Virus record (IMG/VR): IMGVR_UViG_3300027782_000027
Coordinates: 1 to 64,000 of that record
Direction: 5' to 3' (one strand)
DNA: 64,000 nucleotides
Under the pieces are notes generated by a model. The model did no database searches, was not told the DNA's origin, and saw nothing but the letters and a program-made list of their open reading frames with translations. The position numbers and the translations under genes are program-made. The stretch's first letter is position 1; the number at the start of each line of letters is the position of its first letter. Positions 3,113-63,122 of this stretch are shown here, piece by piece.

Positions 3113-3451
3113 TTAATTTTCAGACGGTAATTTTAACGACCATTGGGAGCTCATTATCTTGTTGGACATTTGACCCTCCAAATTTAGTTTATTCTTAACC
3201 CATTGCCCAACAATTCTGGTGGATTGATAACTGTTAAGAGAAAAGAAGGAAGAAATGGCTTCAATTAAACCTTTATAGATAAAACACAATTCATTATTGG
3301 AATGATTACCACCATATTGAATTTGAGCTGACTCATCTTCAGGATATGAAAAATATATACTGGCACCAGTTTTAGTTATAATGAAATCCTGACTATCAAG
3401 ATACCTGAATATTACTTTATCTAATTGTGATTCTGTGATTAAATATTTCAT
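3113..3451 (-). CDS. MKYLITE-family small protein
   Basis: MKYLITESQLDKVIFRYLD...FFSL...WV paralog family. Confidence 0.8.
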   Translation of the reverse strand: MKYLITESQLDKVIFRYLDSQDFIITKTGASIYFSYPEDESAQIQYGGNHSNNELCFIYKGLIEAISSFFSLNSYQSTRIVGQWVKNKLNLEGQMSNKIMSSQWSLKLPSEN

Positions 3452-3819
3452 GATAATGTTATACTTCTAACTGATTTAACCTCATAGTCAGGAAAGAACT
3501 CATTAAATACATCTGACATAATGAATTTGCCGTGAACTAACCAAATGGGATGAGGAAACGCTGTACCATATATATCGTCAAAGTTCCTATTATAGTATAA
3601 ATCGCCACTTGGTTTATTATAAACCATTACAGCGTTTTGGTCACTATCAAATAAGTTAAGTCTTAAATCATTTTCATCATATGAATTAACCAAATTTGCA
3701 AAATAAGGAACCAATTTAGGTTTCAGTCTTTCGTATTGTTCCGTATATTCAGAATCTCTCCAAGTTCTTTCAAGTTCAGATATTAATTTATGTTGTGACT
3801 CGGTAATAATATACTTCAT
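3448..3819 (-). CDS. MKYIITE-leader small protein
   Basis: shared leader; upstream TATTTAT motif. Confidence 0.8.
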   Translation of the reverse strand: MKYIITESQHKLISELERTWRDSEYTEQYERLKPKLVPYFANLVNSYDENDLRLNLFDSDQNAVMVYNKPSGDLYYNRNFDDIYGTAFPHPIWLVHGKFIMSDVFNEFFPDYEVKSVRSITLS

Positions 3820-3851
3820 GTAATAATAAATATAATTATATTTATTATATT

Positions 3852-4175
3852 ATGAACCTACAAGAGAATATAAAAAAAGTATTAAGGGAAGAAACAGATT
3901 TTTCACCACAGTTCAAAAGAAGACTGAATAGATTTAAATCGTTTGTATGGGATAACAATGTAACTAATTATCCATGTGATTTTGAAAACTTTGAAGCGTT
4001 CATGCGTGGTATACAACATGAAATTATGGACATGATTACAGATGGTTCTGATACCGATGGTCCATTGTCTGAGTGGTTAAAATATAAAGATGGTGTTACG
4101 TATGTAGAAAACTACATGAGGGATGACTTAGAAAAGTTTTATAATAAAGAATGTGTTGATGTCTTATACGTATAA
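3852..4175 (+). CDS. MNLQENIKKVLREE-leader small protein
   Basis: leader shared with 5643 and 9201. Confidence 0.8.
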   Translation: MNLQENIKKVLREETDFSPQFKRRLNRFKSFVWDNNVTNYPCDFENFEAFMRGIQHEIMDMITDGSDTDGPLSEWLKYKDGVTYVENYMRDDLEKFYNKECVDVLYV

Positions 4176-4520
4176 ATCAAGAAATTGTTCCACTGTTATT
4201 CCAAGACCTGAGATACCAAATAAATTCATAAATTCAGATTCATCATATCTATCACATCCGTTATTGATAATCCAAGGAATATCTGTAACATAATTCATCT
4301 GATAAAGTATATCATAACTATTATCTAATTTTATAAGATACATCGGACCATAGTTATCCATACTAAGTCTTCTTCGTAAACCATCATCAGTAATACAGTT
4401 ATCAAAAGACATCATTACATCAATCAAATCTGGGTCAATCTCCACACGACCCGTAAGGTCAATATTAAATTTGTCTTTAATTAATGTTTTTAATTTTGAT
4501 TCAGTGATTAAGTATTTCAT
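4164..4520 (-). CDS. MKYLITE-leader small protein
   Basis: shared leader. Confidence 0.8.
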   Translation of the reverse strand: MKYLITESKLKTLIKDKFNIDLTGRVEIDPDLIDVMMSFDNCITDDGLRRRLSMDNYGPMYLIKLDNSYDILYQMNYVTDIPWIINNGCDRYDESEFMNLFGISGLGITVEQFLDLYV

Positions 4521-4536
4521 TATATATAAATATTAG

Positions 4537-4947
4537 TTAACAGTTACCTGTATTATAAACCTCAATATTGTGACCTCTAATTAGACCTCCACCGAACTGA
4601 TATAAAGCCTTAGCAATAGTATCTCTATACACACTCCTATTACCTTCTTCATACATATACCTCCCCACATTTTCAGGTTCCGGCTTAGGTATGTAGACAA
4701 CCAAATCCATAGAGTTACGAGTGGGGATGATATTATAACTACAATATCTTAAGACGGTTGAAATATCATTTTCAAATATAGTTTTTGTTAGAAAGATAAT
4801 ATCTTCTCTTTTTCCTTCAAGACCAATCTCATCAATAATATCTTCAGGTTCCTTATCAGTCATTTTACACAGAGTACGCATACCAAATTTCTCTAATAAG
4901 GGTTTAAGAGTTTTGCTATATTGATTCTCAGTGATTAAGTATTTCAT
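4537..4947 (-). CDS. MKYLITE-leader small protein
   Basis: shared leader. Confidence 0.8.
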   Translation of the reverse strand: MKYLITENQYSKTLKPLLEKFGMRTLCKMTDKEPEDIIDEIGLEGKREDIIFLTKTIFENDISTVLRYCSYNIIPTRNSMDLVVYIPKPEPENVGRYMYEEGNRSVYRDTIAKALYQFGGGLIRGHNIEVYNTGNC

Positions 4948-4955
4948 ATATTATA

Positions 4956-5285
4956 TTAGTTATTTACTCTTATCCATACATTCGGTGCGGGTTTAGCCCC
5001 ACGGACTTGTACAACTATTACTTTGAGGGTATTTTCAACCCATCTACGGATAAGTTCCATGGAATCGGAGATACCCAAAGAAAAGAAAGAGGCCACTTCA
5101 TTAATTAAACTATTAACAATGTAACACCAGCCACTAATTTTATCATATCTAATCTCAGCGTATTCATCATCTTCTAAATTAACTAAAAATATAGTTGCAC
5201 CCTTTTTAATCTGAATAAAGTTCTTAATATCCAAATATCTAAAGATTACTCTGTCTAATTGTGATTCGGTGATAAGGTATTTCAT
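4956..5285 (-). CDS. MKYLITE-family small protein
   Basis: close paralog of 8520-8816. Confidence 0.8.
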   Translation of the reverse strand: MKYLITESQLDRVIFRYLDIKNFIQIKKGATIFLVNLEDDEYAEIRYDKISGWCYIVNSLINEVASFFSLGISDSMELIRRWVENTLKVIVVQVRGAKPAPNVWIRVNN

Positions 5286-5288
5286 ATA

Positions 5289-5609
5289 TTAATATTCAAA
5301 AAACATAACATCAACATCAAATACTTTACTAAACCAATCAGAAATGAATTTACCTGATTGCTCTTTATCAAGTGGATACATGGATGAAAACTTATCTAAA
5401 AAAGATTCATCAATAAATAATCTACCATCACTATGGTCAAACTCCATTAAAATAAAAAAATCAGGGCCTCTTTCCTGGCTATATATATTAATGAAATCAC
5501 TATCTGATGTTCTATCATAATCTAATATATTATTTAACTCAGATATCATTAAATTATTTATTACCGATTTGGCTTTATCTAATTGTGATTCGGTGATAAG
5601 ATATTTCAT
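5289..5609 (-). CDS. MKYLITE-leader small protein (start moved to 5609)
   Basis: shared leader begins at codon 8 of the track ORF. Confidence 0.8.
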   Translation of the reverse strand: MKYLITESQLDKAKSVINNLMISELNNILDYDRTSDSDFINIYSQERGPDFFILMEFDHSDGRLFIDESFLDKFSSMYPLDKEQSGKFISDWFSKVFDVDVMFFEY

Positions 5610-5642
5610 ATAGAATATAAATATAATCATATTTATAATAAT

Positions 5643-5972
5643 ATGGACTTAAAAGAATCTATAAAAAGAATACTGAGGGAAGAACTATCGGCGAGAATTA
5701 AAAGAAGACTTTCTAATGATGAAATGGAAAATGAGTTTCTTGAATCTTTTGAAGGTGCTTATCGTCTTACAAAAGACAGAAAGGTTTTAAGTTCACATTT
5801 TTTAGATGAGTTAGTCTACACAACAATAACCTTTATGATGGATGGGGTACATTGGAGATTTGTTAGCACATTACCTGAAGATGAATTTTGGTATGATGAT
5901 ATACACCAAGGGTTAGAAAATCATTATAGAAAAAGAATTACACGGATGTATAATGAAAGAAAAGGTTTTTAA
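5643..5972 (+). CDS. MDLKESIKRILREE-leader small protein
   Basis: shared leader; similar to 3852-4175. Confidence 0.8.
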   Translation: MDLKESIKRILREELSARIKRRLSNDEMENEFLESFEGAYRLTKDRKVLSSHFLDELVYTTITFMMDGVHWRFVSTLPEDEFWYDDIHQGLENHYRKRITRMYNERKGF

Positions 5973-5975
5973 AGA

Positions 5976-6254
5976 TTAATTAGAGTTTAAGAATTTAAGT
6001 AACGCTCCAATATATTTGGAACGTTTATCATAGAATTCAGTATCATCATCATATTGAAAAAACTCTTCACCTCTATGTCTATCAATGAACTTTTCAATTA
6101 ATTCATAAGCGTAATCATCTCTGTCGGCGGAATCTTCAAAATCTTCTTCATCCATAATGTAGTTATAATCATCCCTAAGTGCTTCCAATTCATCCATTGT
6201 AAACCTCCTAAGTAAAAATACTTCTAACTGTGATTCTGTAATTAAGTATTTCAT
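5976..6254 (-). CDS. MKYLITE-leader acidic small protein
   Basis: shared leader. Confidence 0.8.
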   Translation of the reverse strand: MKYLITESQLEVFLLRRFTMDELEALRDDYNYIMDEEDFEDSADRDDYAYELIEKFIDRHRGEEFFQYDDDTEFYDKRSKYIGALLKFLNSN

Positions 6255-6267
6255 TATTCGTTAACCA

Positions 6268-6621
6268 TTAATCTGTAACTATTAATCTGTAATCATATGG
6301 ACCATCCCAAATCGTACTATTACTAATACCCAAAGTATTATTAACCCATTCTTTGATTATATCCAAACAATCCGATTTACCAATGGGTAATAAGGTAGAT
6401 AAATCCTCAGTCAAACTACGATTTACAAACACCCAATTCCTAACTTCACCAAAGGCGTTGTTAACATAAACACTAATCTGTGATTGACTATCTGACTCAC
6501 TGTTTAAGAAATATATATAATTGTTGAATCTCTTCTTGTTGTCATATATCACAAAGTCCTGAATATCAAGATACTTAAAGATTACTTTCTCTAATTTTGA
6601 TTCGGTGATAAGGTATTTCAT
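6268..6621 (-). CDS. MKYLITE-family small protein
   Basis: paralog family motif. Confidence 0.8.
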   Translation of the reverse strand: MKYLITESKLEKVIFKYLDIQDFVIYDNKKRFNNYIYFLNSESDSQSQISVYVNNAFGEVRNWVFVNRSLTEDLSTLLPIGKSDCLDIIKEWVNNTLGISNSTIWDGPYDYRLIVTD

Positions 6622-6633
6622 TATATATAAATA

Positions 6634-7002
6634 TTAGTTAAGGGGTATTCCCAATAACGAATGAATAAGGATGTCTTTGTTAGACGGTATTTTTAACCAA
6701 GACTGGGACATCAAAGTAGCCTTGGTGGTATTTGTAACCTTCATTTGTAGGGTATTCCCAACCCACCTACCAATAGCTGATTTAGAATCAGATTCGTCCA
6801 AAGAAAATAACGATGAGATGTTCTTGATTAATTCGGGACTTATTACACAACCAAAATTACCATTTTTGATTTGAGCATATTCATCATCTTCAGAGTTAAC
6901 GAAGTATACTAAAAGACCTATTTTAATTTGAATAAAATCTTGATGGTTCAAGTAAATAAAGATTGCTCTATCTAATTGTGATTCTGTAATTAAGTATTTC
7001 AT
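6634..7002 (-). CDS. MKYLITE-family small protein (start moved to 7002)
   Basis: leader begins at codon 15 of the track ORF. Confidence 0.8.
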   Translation of the reverse strand: MKYLITESQLDRAIFIYLNHQDFIQIKIGLLVYFVNSEDDEYAQIKNGNFGCVISPELIKNISSLFSLDESDSKSAIGRWVGNTLQMKVTNTTKATLMSQSWLKIPSNKDILIHSLLGIPLN

Positions 7003-7109
7003 TATATATAAATACAAAGATACACATAAAACTGAACAATACATATTGGGTTAATAATTTAATAAGAATAAGATAATATGGTTTGAGGTCGTTTTTAATA
7101 CTTATTATT

Positions 7110-7817
7110 ATGGATTTATCAAAGTTTTTAACCATAGTAATCCCTTGTAAGAACGAGGGCAAGATAATTGAACAAACGTTGTCCTTATTAAACTTTCAAA
7201 AGGGAATACAAGATGTTAGAGTTATTGTTTGTGATTCATCGGATGATGATTATACATCCTATTCTTTGGAAAATAGGAGAACAGATTATTTTAATCTACA
7301 GATTATTTCAGGAGGACTTCCGTCTGTTGCAAGAAATAAGGGAGCAGAGAATGTGGAAACACCTTATGTTCTATTTTTGGATGCTGACATATTCTTATTG
7401 GATTTTGACATATTAAACAATTGTATATGGGAGTTCTTATTACATAATACAGATTTGATTACATGTAAGGTAAGGTCAACGACAGGTGAGTATAATAGTA
7501 TATTCAGATTGTTTGACACCATACAAAAGGTATTTAAACCAATCACGCCATTTTGTCTTGGTGGGTTTATGATGGTTAAGAAAGAAGTATATGATACAAT
7601 CGGCGGGTTTGATGAAAACGCAAGAGTTGCTGAGGATTATCTATTCTCCAAACAAGTTAAACCAAGTAAGTTTTATATCATGAATACAACAGTATTCACA
7701 AGTCCAAGAAGGTTCAAACAGAAAGGTGTGTGGTATATGTTAAAACTTATGGTTAGTTCATTCTTCAACAGGAACAATAAAAATCATTTTGAGGATGATA
7801 AAGGATACTGGGAATGA
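7110..7817 (+). CDS. glycosyltransferase family 2
   Basis: IVIPCKNE, ARNKGA, LFLDAD (DxD) and GGFDE...ED motifs. Confidence 0.9.
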   Translation: MDLSKFLTIVIPCKNEGKIIEQTLSLLNFQKGIQDVRVIVCDSSDDDYTSYSLENRRTDYFNLQIISGGLPSVARNKGAENVETPYVLFLDADIFLLDFDILNNCIWEFLLHNTDLITCKVRSTTGEYNSIFRLFDTIQKVFKPITPFCLGGFMMVKKEVYDTIGGFDENARVAEDYLFSKQVKPSKFYIMNTTVFTSPRRFKQKGVWYMLKLMVSSFFNRNNKNHFEDDKGYWE

Positions 7818-8527
7818 ATAATTGGAAAACGATAATCATGAGTGACTTACACTTAGGAGCGAGACAATCACAGACAGATAAGATAATAAGTTTCTTGGAT
7901 AATAACACAACGGAAAAACTAATACTGAACGGTGATATAATAGATGGTTGGGCTCTCAAAGGTAATGGTAAATGGACAAAGGATTGTACCAAGATATTCA
8001 GGAAGTTCATGAAGATGTCCGAGAAGAATACAAAGGTAATTTATATAAGAGGAAACCATGATGACTTCTTAAAAGATTTTATTCCATTTAAATTAAACAA
8101 CATCAGGATTGTAAGGAAGTATGTTCATACAGGGATAGATAATAGAAAGTATTTTTGTTTTCACGGAGATGTATTGGATTTTGTTATAATGGAAGCAAGA
8201 TGGCTTGCAGTAATCGGTGGATGGTCATATGATATTGTCATTAAGTTTAATACTCTATATAACAAAATAAGAAAGTGGTTTAACTTACCATATCATTCAT
8301 TAGCTAACACAATAAAACAATCTGTAAAAGGGGCGATTAACTTTGTATCTGATTTTGAGGATAACGCGAAAGGTTTAACAAAACAAAAGGGATATGATGT
8401 TGCGGTGTGTGGACATATTCATCACCCGAAGATAGAGAATGACTATATGAACTCAGGAGACTTTTGTGAGAACTCTACATGTCTTGTAGAAGATTACAAT
8501 GGGGTGTGGAAAATAATTACTATCTAA
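7814..8527 (+). CDS. UDP-2,3-diacylglucosamine hydrolase-like (LpxH family) metallophosphoesterase
   Basis: SDLHLG, GDIID, GNHD, HGD, GHIH, NSGDF calcineurin-like motifs; translationally coupled to the GT2 gene. Confidence 0.85.
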   Translation: MNNWKTIIMSDLHLGARQSQTDKIISFLDNNTTEKLILNGDIIDGWALKGNGKWTKDCTKIFRKFMKMSEKNTKVIYIRGNHDDFLKDFIPFKLNNIRIVRKYVHTGIDNRKYFCFHGDVLDFVIMEARWLAVIGGWSYDIVIKFNTLYNKIRKWFNLPYHSLANTIKQSVKGAINFVSDFEDNAKGLTKQKGYDVAVCGHIHHPKIENDYMNSGDFCENSTCLVEDYNGVWKIITI

Positions 8528-8816
8528 CTATAACTTCTTTAACTCTTCTATCCAAAGTATTCTCAACCCATCTAGCAATAACATATTTAGAATTATCAAA
8601 TTCTATAGAGAAGAAATCTTTAATCTCATCAATTAACCCAAAAATTATTACACACTCACCACCTCTAAAGTATTCGATTGATGAGTCGATATATTCACCA
8701 CCTTCAGAATTGGCGAAGTAAATTGCACTCCCTCTTTTAATCTGAATAAAGTTCTTAATATCCAAATATCTAAAGATTACTCTATCTAATTGTGATTCTG
8801 TTATAAGGTATTTCAT
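8520..8816 (-). CDS. MKYLITE-family small protein
   Basis: paralog family motif. Confidence 0.8.
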   Translation of the reverse strand: MKYLITESQLDRVIFRYLDIKNFIQIKRGSAIYFANSEGGEYIDSSIEYFRGGECVIIFGLIDEIKDFFSIEFDNSKYVIARWVENTLDRRVKEVIVR

Positions 8817-8832
8817 TATATATAAATATTAG

Positions 8833-9168
8833 TTAGAAGGGTAACCTCAATGTCAAACTTCCACTGTTTGTAATGGACATTGATTTTTCGTAACTGTATT
8901 TTACTTGTAATGTATCACCAATCCATCGAACAATAATCTTCTCAGAATCAGAATCACTCAAAGAAAATAATGATGAAATATCGTCAACTAATTCATAATT
9001 CATAAAAGAAAAATTATCACTCATATCGTATCTGATTTGACAATACTTATCACCTTCTGAATTAACAAAGTATATAGTGTCTTTATCCTCAACCTGAATA
9101 AAATCTTGATTGTCAAGATACCTAAAGATTACTTTTTCTAATTTAGATTCTGTGATAAGATATTTCAT
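8833..9168 (-). CDS. MKYLITE-family small protein
   Basis: paralog family motif. Confidence 0.8.
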   Translation of the reverse strand: MKYLITESKLEKVIFRYLDNQDFIQVEDKDTIYFVNSEGDKYCQIRYDMSDNFSFMNYELVDDISSLFSLSDSDSEKIIVRWIGDTLQVKYSYEKSMSITNSGSLTLRLPF

Positions 9169-9200: not shown

Positions 9201-9656
9201 ATGAACCTACAACAAAACATAAAAAGAATATTAAGGGAAGAATACACCGTAAAACAGATGAAGTTATTAACTATCGCAAGTCAGGTGGGGTTACTAAAGA
9301 CAGGAGAAATGTTCGGTGGTATAGAATACCTTATAAATGTGTTAGGTGATGAGTTCCTTACAACAAACAATAAGGTTAAGATTATTAGGGAAGTAGTAGA
9401 AACAACCGATTATGAATATATCACACTAATGGATATGAATGAAAACCCAATAGTTCTCAAGGTTGGAGACGGTAAACTTTCACAAATAGAAATGATAAAT
9501 AAAGAAGATGTTACAGTGTTCCATTATGGTGGATATGAATACTCACAAGATTTAGGTGAAAGTTATATATCTTATGAAGAACTACCAAAAGATGTATTAG
9601 ATGATATCTTTAATATGGTATTAGATTTCTATACAGATACTTTAGAGAATAAGTAA
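9201..9656 (+). CDS. MNLQQNIKRILREE-leader protein
   Basis: shared leader. Confidence 0.8.
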   Translation: MNLQQNIKRILREEYTVKQMKLLTIASQVGLLKTGEMFGGIEYLINVLGDEFLTTNNKVKIIREVVETTDYEYITLMDMNENPIVLKVGDGKLSQIEMINKEDVTVFHYGGYEYSQDLGESYISYEELPKDVLDDIFNMVLDFYTDTLENK

Positions 9657-10385
9657 TTATTGATTTAAGACCTGTTCCATCACATAATTCATTACAGACA
9701 TTTCTACATCCGTTGTACATACCTTATTATTTAATACCTCTTCCACTCCTCTTGTGAAAGGTCCAGAATATGCTTCCATTGTAGATACCTTATGATTTAA
9801 TACCTCTTCTACCTCAATTCTTCCAACGTAATCAAGTGAATCGGTTGTGGATACCTTATGATTTAAGACCTCTTCCACCAATGAATGTTCGGGGTATTTG
9901 AGAATGGTAGTTGTAGACACCTTAACATTATGACTTAATACATCTTCCACCTTCCAAGGAACACGAACTTTAACATCGCACGTTGTGGATACCTTATGAT
10001 TTAATACATCTTCCACCATCATGCTTTCAACACCGCTACCTGTCACGGTTGTGGATACCTTATGATTTAAGACCTCTTCCACCACGTAGTTCCTAAGCCC
10101 TATAGGGCGATATGTTGCGGATACCTTATGATTTAAGACCTCTTCCACCCAAGAAGATAGAACAGGACAAAAATCATCCGAACTCATGGAGAATATTTGA
10201 AAAAACGAATTAAAAAAATCGTATCTCCACCATAAAGTACCTGACTCATCAAGTTCAAAGTACCAATGTTTATTATCCCTATTAATGAACCATATAGACC
10301 CATTATAAGGAATAATCTCACAATCACCTAACTCTCTATATAGGTGTTTAAAAATAATTTGTTTTAATCTATCTGTAATAACCAT
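9657..10385 (-). CDS. repeat-array protein 4 (7 unique cassettes)
   Basis: paralog of 435-1235; TATATTTG element just upstream of the ATG. Confidence 0.85.
   Translation of the reverse strand: MVITDRLKQIIFKHLYRELGDCEIIPYNGSIWFINRDNKHWYFELDESGTLWWRYDFFNSFFQIFSMSSDDFCPVLSSWVEEVLNHKVSATYRPIGLRNYVVEEVLNHKVSTTVTGSGVESMMVEDVLNHKVSTTCDVKVRVPWKVEDVLSHNVKVSTTTILKYPEHSLVEEVLNHKVSTTDSLDYVGRIEVEEVLNHKVSTMEAYSGPFTRGVEEVLNNKVCTTDVEMSVMNYVMEQVLNQ
9712..10149. CRISPR. CRISPR-like array 4, in frame; 7 repeats (one with a 6-nt insertion) plus a degenerate one ending at 9681
   Basis: Repeats at 9712, 9778, 9844, 9910 (42 nt), 9982, 10048, 10114; all spacers 30 nt. Confidence 0.55.
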
Positions 10386-11198
10386 AGAGCAAATATAGTA
10401 AGAAATTATGAACTAAACAAACTCATTCCCCCATTCCACTATCGTGTCGTTCCATTCCCCTAGCGGGTCATTACACTAATGGGTTCATTCATTTGTTTAC
10501 TTCTTAATTTCCCCTATTGTATGAATCTATAATTAACGTACAACACTAATCTATAATAATCCCCCATAATGAAAGACATATAGTATGAGGGGACATAACA
10601 TATTACTGTTAATGGTATTGTACCCATCGGGATAATGAAATACCCTAAAGGGTATATAATATGATATGAGTATACCTGTTAGGGTATAAAATATATGGTG
10701 GAATGTGAAGGGGACAATGTCCTTTATAGGGAACATAACCCTACAGGGTTATCCCTTATATAACACATTATGTCCCACTTTTTACCACCACTATAATTGT
10801 CCATATCATGTGTCTATATGGTAAGGGGAAATCTTAAAAACCTCATTATATTCGGGTCAAGAACCCCGTTGAAGACACTATAAAATACACTTTTCGTTGA
10901 AGGATTTAAACAACTAAAGTCTGTCCACGCCACTTTATTGTTACATCCTATTTTTAGCTGGAAAATGTATATAGTTAAAAAAACCCTTCTCACACTATCA
11001 GGAGGACCACTTTTTTCACTTTTCATATAACCAAAAACCCCTCTCACATATATGTCAGTGGTAAAAAGTGGGAAATAAAAACTTAACATAAACTATACAT
11101 TATACCATATATTTATTATGATTATTAGGTCTAAAAGTGGTCAAGGGGATTATCCCCCATCTGACACTCAACTGACATTTTGACAAAATCAAGAAAAA

Positions 11199-47204: not shown

Positions 47205-47278
47205 GCCTTCGTAGCTCAGTAGGATAGAGCAACAGATTTCTAATCTGTGGGCCAGGGGTTCGAATCCCTTCGGGGGTA
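47205..47278 (+). tRNA. tRNA-Arg (anticodon TCT)
   Basis: GCCTTCG acceptor, TAGCTCAG..GGATAGAGC D arm, ACAGA-TTTCTAA-TCTGT anticodon arm, GGTTCGAATCC T arm; CCA not encoded; promoter and terminator flank it. Confidence 0.93.
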
Positions 47279-47284
47279 CTATTT

Positions 47285-50463: not shown

Positions 50464-50856
50464 TGGTGGAGGTGCTGGGTTTCGAACCCAGGTCCAAAAA
50501 TGTTTACGATAAAACACTACACGTTTAGGTCATTGTTTTTCTAAACAATCCGAAACTTCACAATTCCCTTATTTTATAGTGGTTCGGTTTACTGAGAACT
50601 AATCCTCCACTTTGTTCCTTTTCGGATAGAAACCACACCACGGTACGAGCTTCTGTTTCAAGGCGTATGCTTACCGGCCCATTGTATACTAATCTTAGAT
50701 TAGGCTACAGATACTTCTTCAGTACGGATTAAACCGAGTGTAGAAAGTTTTGCAATTGTGTTGCCGTTTGTTTTTTAAACCAGTTTTACAGGGTTAGTTT
50801 AGCCCCGACGTGCGTTTTATAATAAATTCATTCCTGTCAAATCCAGAAACACCCCC
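50464..50856 (-). ncRNA. ssrA: tmRNA
   Basis: 5' GGGGGTGTTTCTGGATTTGACAGG; 3' CTGGGTTCGAAACCCAGCACCTCCACCA; tag ORF 50765-50700; TATCTTTG promoter upstream. Confidence 0.92.
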
Positions 50857-60091: not shown

Positions 60092-61837
60092 ATGAGTTTA
60101 TCTAAAGAAGCCGTTTTAATGGAGTATGCCAAGTGTATGAAATCAACACCATACGCCCTTAAAACTTATTTACAGACATATGACAACACTGTTTCAAAGT
60201 ATGTCCCATTAGAGTTATTCCCTGACCAAATTAGTCTGGTTGAAGATTATGAAAACTATAATGAAAATATTGCACTAAAGTATAGACAAGCTGGTGTATC
60301 TACGGTAACCGCTGCTTGGTCATCAAAAAAACTTGTTTTTGCTAAAAAGAATAGTCCTGAAAAGGTTTTGATTATAGCAAATAAGTTGGATACTGCGGTG
60401 GAGGTGGCGAATAAGATTAGAGGATTCACCGACCAATGGCCTAGTTGGGTTGGTGTTGGGTTTTCTGCTGAAAAAAATTCACAAAGACATTTTAAATTAA
60501 CTAACGGATGTGAAGTTAAGGCAGTTGCGACATCTAAGGATGCTCTTCGTGGTTATACACCCACAATATTAATATTTGACGAGGCTGCGTATATTGAAGC
60601 TGATGGGGATTTTTGGGCGGCTTGTATGGCATCCTTATCTACAGGTGGTAAAGTAATAGTTGTATCAACACCAAACGGATATGACGCAATCTATTATGAA
60701 ATTTACGACCAAGCATTAAAGGGAATGAATGAATTCAAAGTTTCCGAAATGGTTTGGTGGAAAGACCCAAGATATGCGAAAGATTTATCATTAGTTAATG
60801 TTAAAGATATTATTCATTATTATTTAAATCGTAATGAATACCCGAATGTTGAAATTATTGAATATAATAATAAAGAAAAGAACTTTGATGAGATAAGACA
60901 ACTGATTTCACAGGGTTATAAGCCAAACTCATCTTGGTATGAGTCAATGGTAAAGAAACTTAAATACGATAAACGTAAAGTTAACCAGGAGTTGGAATGT
61001 GCGTTTCTTGGTTCAGGGGATAACGTATTTAATTCTGATATGTTGGAAGATTTAAGGGTAAATATGGTTAAGGAACCACCTACGAAGATGATGGGTGGTG
61101 GACTATGGATTTGGAAAGAACCTGAAATAGGTAAAAAATATATCATGGGAGTTGACGTATCTCGTGGTGACAGTGAAGACTTTTCAACATTTCAAATTGT
61201 TGATTTTGATACAAGAGAACAGGTTGCTGAGTATGTTGGTAAACTTCCTCCTGACACTTTGGCTGAAATATGTTATAAGTGGGGTAATATGTATAATGCG
61301 TTCATTGTTGTGGATATTACTGGTGGTATGGGTGTTACAACATCTTTAAGATTAAGGGAACTTGGATATAGGAATGTGTATGTTGATGGAGTTGATGTGT
61401 CAAACAAATGGCAATACGACCCAAAGGCAACTGAAAAAATACCAGGAATTAACTTTAATGCTAAAAGAGTTCAAATTATAGCAACTTTTGAAGAATATCT
61501 AAGACATGGATTTAGAATAAATTCAAGTAGGTTGTTAAATGAAATGAATACATTTATTTACATGAATGGAAGACCTGACCACCAAAAGGGACAACATGAT
61601 GACTTGATTATGTCTGTTGCGATGGCACTTTATGTTGGTGAAACATCATTTTCATCACTTAACAAGGTGACAAATCAAACAAAGGCGATGATTGACTCGT
61701 GGACTGTTAACACTAATGAATTTAATAGAAGACAATTTATGGACCCGGTAATTTCACAACAACAAGAAAACTTTAAACGAGAGGCAACAAAAAGTGACTA
61801 CGAAAACTATTTATGGTTATTCGGTGGTAAACGATAA
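60092..61837 (+). CDS. terL: terminase large subunit (T4 gp17-like)
   Basis: KYRQAGVST Walker A variant, ILIFDEAAY Walker B, STPNG, QELEC.FLG, GVDVSRG, HDDLIM. Confidence 0.93.
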
Positions 61838-61841
61838 AAAT

Positions 61842-63122
61842 ATGGGATTATCTAAAAGACAAAGAACGGGAACATATAACGCGACTGGGTCAAGAATGAT
61901 TGTACCTGGACTGGGTGGATTAAGTTCTAAAATACAAAATGGAGATAAAGTTTCTATTCGACCAAATAACACAATTATTTTTGAACCATCTCCGACGCCT
62001 TCGTCAACATCTATACCAACATCTACACCAACTCCAACACCTTCTATAACTCCAACACCTTCTATAACCCCTACTAATACTGTTACGCCAACAAATACAA
62101 TTACTCCTACTAACACTCAAACACCAACTAATACTGTTACACCAACAAATACTCAAACACCAACTAATACTGTTACACCAACAAATACAATTACACCAAC
62201 AAATACAATTACTCCAACTCAAACACCGACTAATACTGTTACACCAACAAATACTCAAACACCAACACCTACTCAAACTCCTACTAATACACCGACACCT
62301 TCAATTACCCCAACTAAAACTGTAACTCCAACGGTAACTCAAACACCTACTAATACTATAACTCCAACACCTTCAATTACTCCAACTAAAACTGTAACTC
62401 CAACGGTTACTCAAACACCAACTAATACCACAACTAAAACACCTACACCAACTACTACACCTACACCAACAAGATTACCAGCATTAGTTTATGATTTAGA
62501 CGCCGCTTATTATTCCGCAATGCCAACTAATGGTTCTGTAGTTTCTGGAACAGGAGCCTATAGTGTTACAGTAACTAATGCAGGAAGTAGTATATCTTGG
62601 AACAGTGCAAATGGTGGGGTATTTATTAAATCAAATAATGTTGGTACAGATGCGATATATGGTGGTCCAAACTATGTAACCAGTCAAAGTTACACAGTAT
62701 TTATGGCCTATAAACTATCAGCAACATCTCTTGGAAGATTGTTAAACACTCAAAATGAAAGTATTAAGGATTGGTTGATGGGGGCATACAATGGTAATCC
62801 AAATACTTTTTATCCAAACTTTAGTGTAAACTTACCATCATCAGGAGCTGATACAGTTTGGCATTTAGATTGGGCAACTTGGGATACGGGGACTAATACA
62901 GGTACACTGTATACCTCAACAAATACCGCCCCAACTAATTTCTCATATTCTGCAACTAATGGTGGTGGAGGTGGATTTAACCAAATAAGATTGTTTAGTC
63001 GTTCATCAGGTAGTGAAGTACAAACAGCAAACATAGGATTTGTTAAAGTTTGGGATGGGGTATTATCATTATCCCAAATACAGGCTCAACACGCTTTATA
63101 CAAAACTAGATTTGGATATTAA
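61842..63122 (+). CDS. Pro/Thr-repeat stalk protein with C-terminal LamG/ConA-like domain
   Basis: about 160 aa of TPTNT/TPTPT repeats; LVYDLDAA...IG.VKVW...LS..QI...Y..RFG. Confidence 0.8.
61988..62470 (+). repeat. coding tandem repeat (18-nt units encoding TPTNT(V/I/Q) and variants)
   Basis: ACACCAACTAATACT.. units. Confidence 0.85.

Follow-up and report, generated by a model that had tools for sequence, protein, structure and literature searches.

In-frame, CRISPR-like cassette arrays in four protein-coding genes of a freshwater jumbo phage

Anatomy of the four array genes and their surroundings

The sequence analyzed here (hereafter the window) comprises the first 64,000 nucleotides of IMG/VR record IMGVR_UViG_3300027782_000027, a 240,759-bp jumbo phage record from a freshwater metagenome that is about 82% complete and has a GC content of 32%. 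The phage, or close kin, is present in many lake metagenomes from 2016-2025. Four minus-strand ORFs in the window share one plan, in which a 79-residue N-terminal domain is followed by 22-residue units, a truncated repeat and a short tail. Each unit consists of 12 conserved residues (VEEVLNHKVSTT) and 10 residues with no similarity between units, corresponding at the DNA level to a 36-nt repeat and a 30-nt insert. The features of the region, all on the minus strand, are as follows.

9657-10385: array gene 4 (242 aa), N-domain plus in-frame cassette array
10390-10397: TATATTTG (TAnnTTTG), a promoter-like -7 element 4 nt before the ATG and conserved in orthologous loci L008-L021; a TTTG lies about 20 nt further upstream at 10417-10420
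10149-10385: N-terminal domain of gene 4 (79 aa), predicted helix, four strands and two helices, the last helix running into repeat 1
10114-10149: repeat 1 (36 nt), its first G being the last base of the Trp codon
10084-10113: insert 1 (YRPIGLRNYV), unique to this genome
9682-10083: repeats 2-7 (10048-10083, 9982-10017, 9910-9951, 9844-9879, 9778-9813 and 9712-9747) and inserts 2-7, which lie between them, the last at 9682-9711
9910-9951: repeat 4, with a +6 nt in-frame insertion (VEDVLSHNVKVSTT)
9657-9681: truncated terminal repeat (MEQVLNQ) and stop, the conserved tail of orthologues
1883-2527: array gene 3, first of a tandem trio (array 1883-2288); TATCTTTG precedes its ATG at 2521
1222-1899: array gene 2 (array 1222-1663), with its own NSKV repeat variant; its start overlaps the end of gene 3
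435-1235: array gene 1 (array 435-999, eight full repeats); its start overlaps the end of gene 2
3113-9168: eight non-array paralogues of the N-domain (MKYLITESQL family, 98-136 aa) at 3113-3451, 3448-3819, 4956-5285, 5289-5630, 6268-6621, 6634-7044, 8520-8816 and 8833-9168

The initial annotation of gene 4 had described a detached paralogue with its own promoter element, seven spacers shared with no other array, degenerate 3'-terminal repeats in all four genes, a single frame-preserving +6 nt indel and a homogenized NSKV variant in array 2, and our analyses confirmed that these observations are real. Gene 4 has seven full repeats, a truncated terminal repeat and seven variable 30-nt segments, none of which resembles a segment in the three other window arrays. 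The segments are, however, independent only within this genome, as five of the seven recur in orthologous arrays of other phage contigs. The repeat motif had 21 matches in the window against 0 in shuffled sequence, and all 25 copies in the 240-kb genome lie in the four genes. The +6 nt repeat is the only indel in the window and is inherited in orthologues L008-L014, and the NSKV variant of array 2 is also kept in orthologues. An assembly artefact was rejected because the architecture recurs in 36 IMG/VR loci and in many independent lake runs.

The three tandem genes overlap start-on-stop (at 1222-1235 and 1883-1899, with the ATG inside ...AAAGAAAATGAAAGTAACTGA) and only gene 3, the first of the trio, has a TAnnTTTG motif, which suggests one translationally coupled operon. 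The TAnnTTTG motif is the Bacteroidota sigma-A -7 element. In addition, a relative of the N-domain lies on a 2790-bp contig (JBIPPH010000103.1, our locus L038) binned into a Lake Mendota Bacteroidia MAG, the only hit in 185,579 species genomes, although this is a weak host hint or may represent mis-binned phage DNA. Antisense ORFs on the plus strand across the arrays (1244-1495, 1281-1481 and 2122-2340, with repeating WIPYDLIPLPP and similar) exist because one antisense frame of the repeat is open; they are interrupted by stops in the inserts and are by-products.

The window holds eight or more small paralogous genes starting MKYLITESQL on the minus strand, and two further genes (4164-4520 and 4537-4947) share only this N-terminal tag, which the array proteins of some distant relatives (P0090 and P0193) also carry in front of the N-domain. 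Otherwise different proteins encoded at 3852-4175, 5643-5972 and 9201-9656 (plus strand) share a second N-terminal tag, MNLQENIKRILREE. Both tags contain (L/I)xE, the cleavage or capsid-targeting pattern of the T4 prohead protease, and a T4-type Peptidase_S77 prohead protease is encoded at 66655-67089 of the record. These may be packaged, injected proteins. Among 20 neighboring ORFs, only a GT2 glycosyltransferase and a calcineurin-like metallophosphoesterase (7083-8527) had Pfam hits, and both recur near the arrays in 7-8 related loci. Elsewhere in the window, ORF 61794-63122 contains long Thr/Pro-rich tandem repeats (62016-62470; periods 18, 36, 54 and 72), probably a linker in a structural protein, and ARAGORN predicted a tRNA-Arg(TCT) at 47205-47279 and a putative tmRNA-like gene (tag AKLSTLGLIRTEEVSVA) at 50464-50856, both on the minus strand.

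Selection on the reading frame and nucleotide-level definition of the unit

To determine whether the arrays are maintained as coding sequence, we examined 121 distinct inserts from about 50 arrays and found that the gene frame has 0 stops in 1331 codons, in contrast to 42-120 in each of the other five frames. In the window alone the figures were 0 of 222 against 3-21. The period is exactly 66 nt in about 50 arrays from 37 loci, and in relatives 235 of 247 inserts are exactly 30 nt, with all 247 lengths being multiples of three. The N-domain is under purifying selection (dN/dS about 0.1-0.3); in close pairs dS is 0.05-0.12 and dN about 0.01, and the pooled dN/dS is 0.3. AlphaFold2 predicted the N-domain with a pLDDT of about 80-88, whereas the repeat tail scored 24-47 and is probably disordered. 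Pieces of the genes occur in four freshwater metatranscriptome assemblies, but at low depth and with no control for DNA. Together, these data support selection on the arrays as protein, although translation is inferred from sequence and not shown directly.

The unit is nevertheless defined at the nucleotide level. The 36-nt repeat starts one base before a codon boundary, as 212 of 218 repeats begin with G. In 355 distinct decapeptides from 238 proteins, residues that cannot be coded NNG (D, N, H, Y, F, C and I) make up 29-36% of positions 1-9 but 3% of position 10, where Met and Trp are enriched, such that the last variable codon is NNG in 97% of units. There was no other position-specific conservation in the decapeptides. 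The third base of the last Thr codon is free and belongs to the insert. Across 27 distinct array consensus repeats, the stretches GGTGGAAGAGGT, AAGGT and ACAAC are nearly invariant, including the synonymous third positions of GTG, GAG and AAG, although G-ending codons are rare in this genome (G3 11%, GC3 20%). Positions 13, 20-22 and 28-31 vary, with amino acid changes. Protein selection alone does not predict this pattern. At the RNA level there is only a weak 5-bp end stem, which is lost in lineages with other bases at positions 29-31.

The inserts also look foreign in composition. Their GC content is 41-44%, against 32% for the genome and about 30% for the N-domains, mainly through GC3 (36% against 20% for the genome). 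Insert codon positions are partly coding-like (G1 0.27, G3 0.16, T3 0.37), more so than random capture plus a stop filter would give, and their amino acid composition, with raised Arg, His and Cys, lies between random translation and the phage proteome. An apparent amelioration of GC along the array in the window, where first inserts are 48-61% GC, vanished in the full set.

Turnover of units, polarity and origin of the repeat motif

Units are born and lost whole. Distinct inserts are no more similar to one another than codon-shuffled controls, the nearest-neighbor distances of the gene 4 inserts to those of the other window arrays equal those of such controls, and there is no excess of pairs at 7-13 mismatches. 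Inserts shared by orthologous arrays are almost identical (pooled dS 0.017, dN 0.010), yet arrays already differ in several units when the adjacent N-domains differ by dS 0-0.1 and share none at dS above 0.3. Hypermutation and gradual divergence are therefore excluded, and turnover is by gain and loss of units.

Where arrays change was the condition on which the initial annotation had staked its growth model. Among 120 distinct arrays, 184 pairs share at least two units in order, and their unshared units lie on the N-domain side 550 times, internally 228 times and distally 114 times; 153 pairs differ proximally and 56 distally. The first unit is unique in 57% of arrays and the last in 27%. In one example, a shared trunk of three to four distal units carries five different proximal extensions, in the manner of CRISPR spacer trees, and the array-4 orthologues can be derived from one another by front additions plus internal deletions. 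The decay gradient was also confirmed, with mismatches to the first repeat rising from 1.7 at rank 2 to about 5 at ranks 5-8, and repeat variants form contiguous blocks, for example the NSKV block of array 2 over older NRKV units. This fits templating on the first repeat. However, internal and distal differences make up 38% of unshared units, a form lacking the distal unit 9663-9728 co-occurs in three lake samples, assembly graphs break throughout the arrays and chimeras between paralogues exist. Unit loss and recombination therefore act as well, and recombination anchored in the conserved N-domain could mimic part of the polarity, or may even explain much of it.

The interpretation offered by the initial annotation, that arrays grow from the domain-proximal end by copying the first repeat and that the product is selected as an early-expressed protein, is thus partly supported: the polarity and the selection as protein hold, whereas early expression rests only on a promoter-like motif and the low-depth metatranscriptome contigs.

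The origin of the motif was indicated by the eight MKYLITESQL paralogues, which are homologous to the N-domain of the array proteins over 84 columns (hhalign probability 96.3%, E 2e-9). Their C-terminal helix (WVENTLxxKV...) aligns with the first repeat, and BFVD structures of such paralogues superpose at an rmsd of 1.9 over 77 columns. The repeat is therefore a duplicated end of a phage protein domain and not a captured host array. The family is large, with 419 clusters at 50% identity, and divergent members keep the 22-residue period with other motifs.

Searches for known relatives or for a generating machinery returned little. Pfam and PHROGs gave no family for the four proteins, megablast and blastn against GenBank phages gave nothing relevant, and fold searches (PDB wide, AFDB clusters, BFVD and ESM Atlas features) gave no informative match, with Z below 7 and family members as the only hits. 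There was no Cas1 in this record or in two complete relatives, and no reverse transcriptase (RVT_1) in this record. Rfam gave no CRISPR-DR hit at E up to 10, the repeat pattern was absent from 185,579 prokaryote genomes and, at up to 3 mismatches, from 191 genomes of the candidate host order, of which only 27 have Cas1, and no anti-repeat or tracr-like sequence was found in the phage. No protospacer or other source of inserts was found in the phage's own genome (121 inserts), IMG/VR (2 inserts), JGI metagenomes (1 insert) or the 191 candidate-host genomes (arrays 1-3), a search that was far from exhaustive. Literature searches for the repeat strings and for in-frame or coding CRISPR-like arrays in phages found nothing relevant.

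A proposed translated cassette array and its alternatives

Based on these findings, the reading we favor, with moderate confidence, is that the four genes encode real proteins, each with a small folded N-terminal domain from a phage multigene family and a predicted-disordered tail, and that the tail is a fast-turning-over cassette array that grows at the domain-proximal repeat by DNA-level insertion with repeat duplication. In this view, new units would appear next to the N-domain, apparently by duplication of the first repeat, old units would be lost by repeat-to-repeat deletion or recombination, distal repeats would decay, and only inserts that keep the frame open would survive. We regard the anatomy, the selection on the frame, the wholesale turnover of units, the polarity and the origin of the motif as established by our analyses. 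By contrast, the ruler-type insertion with repeat duplication, carried out by an enzyme that was not found and may be new, is an inference, as are translation, early timing and the function. Hypervariability, promoter type and location in a region of small multi-copy genes suggest a host-interaction or anti-defense role, and our guess is that the product serves a fast arms race with the Bacteroidota-type host, for example as an anti-defense or decoy protein or as a multi-peptide precursor.

The main alternative is an ordinary tandem-repeat protein, in which units come from ancient duplications, the conserved 12-mer is held by protein selection and by gene conversion or recombination between repeats, the 10-mer linkers are unconstrained and saturated, and polarity arises because crossovers pair the long conserved N-domain with any repeat, swapping proximal blocks between co-infecting phages drawn from a large standing pool of units. 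This is consistent with the sharing of units between arrays with different N-domains and at different ranks, with the paralogue recombinants, with the common internal and distal differences, with the lack of a dedicated enzyme in the searches and with the derivation of the motif from a protein helix. We consider it unlikely, though not negligible, as it gives no source for new units even though turnover outruns point mutation and no pairs of intermediate similarity exist, and it does not explain the strict 30-nt length, the off-codon boundary with an obligatory G, the G-ending synonymous sites kept across phages whose N-domains are only about 45-55% identical, or the raised GC3 of the inserts. 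A genuine CRISPR mini-array, or an RNA decoy using host Cas proteins to target competitors or to soak up Cas or tracrRNA, with an open frame that is incidental or only stabilizes the transcript, is very unlikely. The 36/30 geometry, unique spacers, leader-end polarity, trailer decay and nucleotide-level conservation would fit, and huge phages with cas-less arrays are reported (PMC7162821), but the strongly selected frame, which argues that the transcript is an mRNA, the homology of the repeat to a helix of non-array paralogues, the absence of a repeat match, anti-repeat or protospacer in the searches above, the few Cas1-bearing candidate hosts and the weak, non-conserved stem all argue against it. 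A resemblance to type VI-B (Cas13b) repeats in the 36/30 geometry and the ...GGTA..ACAAC end was likewise set aside, because the repeat has no conserved hairpin, no host counterpart was found and the motif is a protein helix of a phage family.

A multi-core precursor or polyprotein, with the N-domain as leader, the 12-mers as recognition or cleavage sites and the decapeptides released as a variable peptide library, is a reading of function that is compatible with either generating mechanism. Every variable segment is flanked by the motif on both sides, including a truncated last repeat, the tail is predicted to be disordered and the long leader-like domain is duplicated in four genes. Cassettes of unrelated short peptides between flanks conserved even at silent sites occur in cyanobactin precursors of the PatE/TruE type; a review of this field is PMC4663559. 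However, no protease, cyclase or other maturation enzyme was found by Pfam among the 20 neighboring ORFs, the cores lack the conserved residues that a modification chemistry would require, and the peptides look partly like translations of random sequence. We therefore consider this reading unlikely. The arrays also differ from these precursors in having up to 8-9 units with polar turnover, a phage setting and a long folded leader domain.

Comparison with other systems was also informative. Like CRISPR arrays, including cas-less mini-arrays of phages, the arrays have direct repeats of fixed length within the 23-50 nt range of CRISPR repeats, unique inserts of fixed length, addition at one end, apparent repeat duplication, internal deletions, a degenerate last repeat and array-specific repeat variants; they differ in lying in frame within a protein whose domain supplies the repeat motif, in inserts filtered for open frame, and in the lack of cas genes, cognate host repeat and conserved hairpin in our searches, with no protospacers in the limited search described above. 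Diversity-generating retroelements and cassette-based antigenic variation (vlsE, pilE/pilS) similarly diversify a short stretch of a protein between conserved sequences, but we found no reverse transcriptase, template repeat, silent donor cassette or second copy of any insert in the genome, and units are replaced whole rather than mutated or converted. The hyperplastic early regions of T4-type phages, with their multigene families of small proteins, share with this T4-like phage, in which a prohead protease S77 is present, clusters of small paralogous ORFans with their own promoters and fast gene turnover, but to our knowledge nothing like an internal repeat-insert array has been described for them.

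We could not find a previous description of genes built in this way, with CRISPR-like repeats, inserts and polarity in an open reading frame. The evidence leaves possible, although we hold it only tentatively, that these phages or their hosts possess an undescribed DNA-level ruler machinery that, like CRISPR adaptation, duplicates the first repeat and adds a 30-nt segment, but acts on a protein-coding gene and writes novel decapeptides into a translated phage protein, presumably for an arms race with host defenses; this would be a new kind of diversity generator. If the arrays really gain de novo 30-nt units with repeat duplication, this would be a CRISPR-adaptation-like process running without known Cas proteins and with its output read as protein, a new route to protein hypervariability in viruses and a possible source of new ruler-type integrases. 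Under the tamer, recombination-only reading, it is still a widespread, unannotated family in freshwater jumbo phages, which standard tools would miscall as CRISPR arrays, and its turnover is fast enough to serve as a strain marker and points to a strong, as yet unidentified selective pressure.
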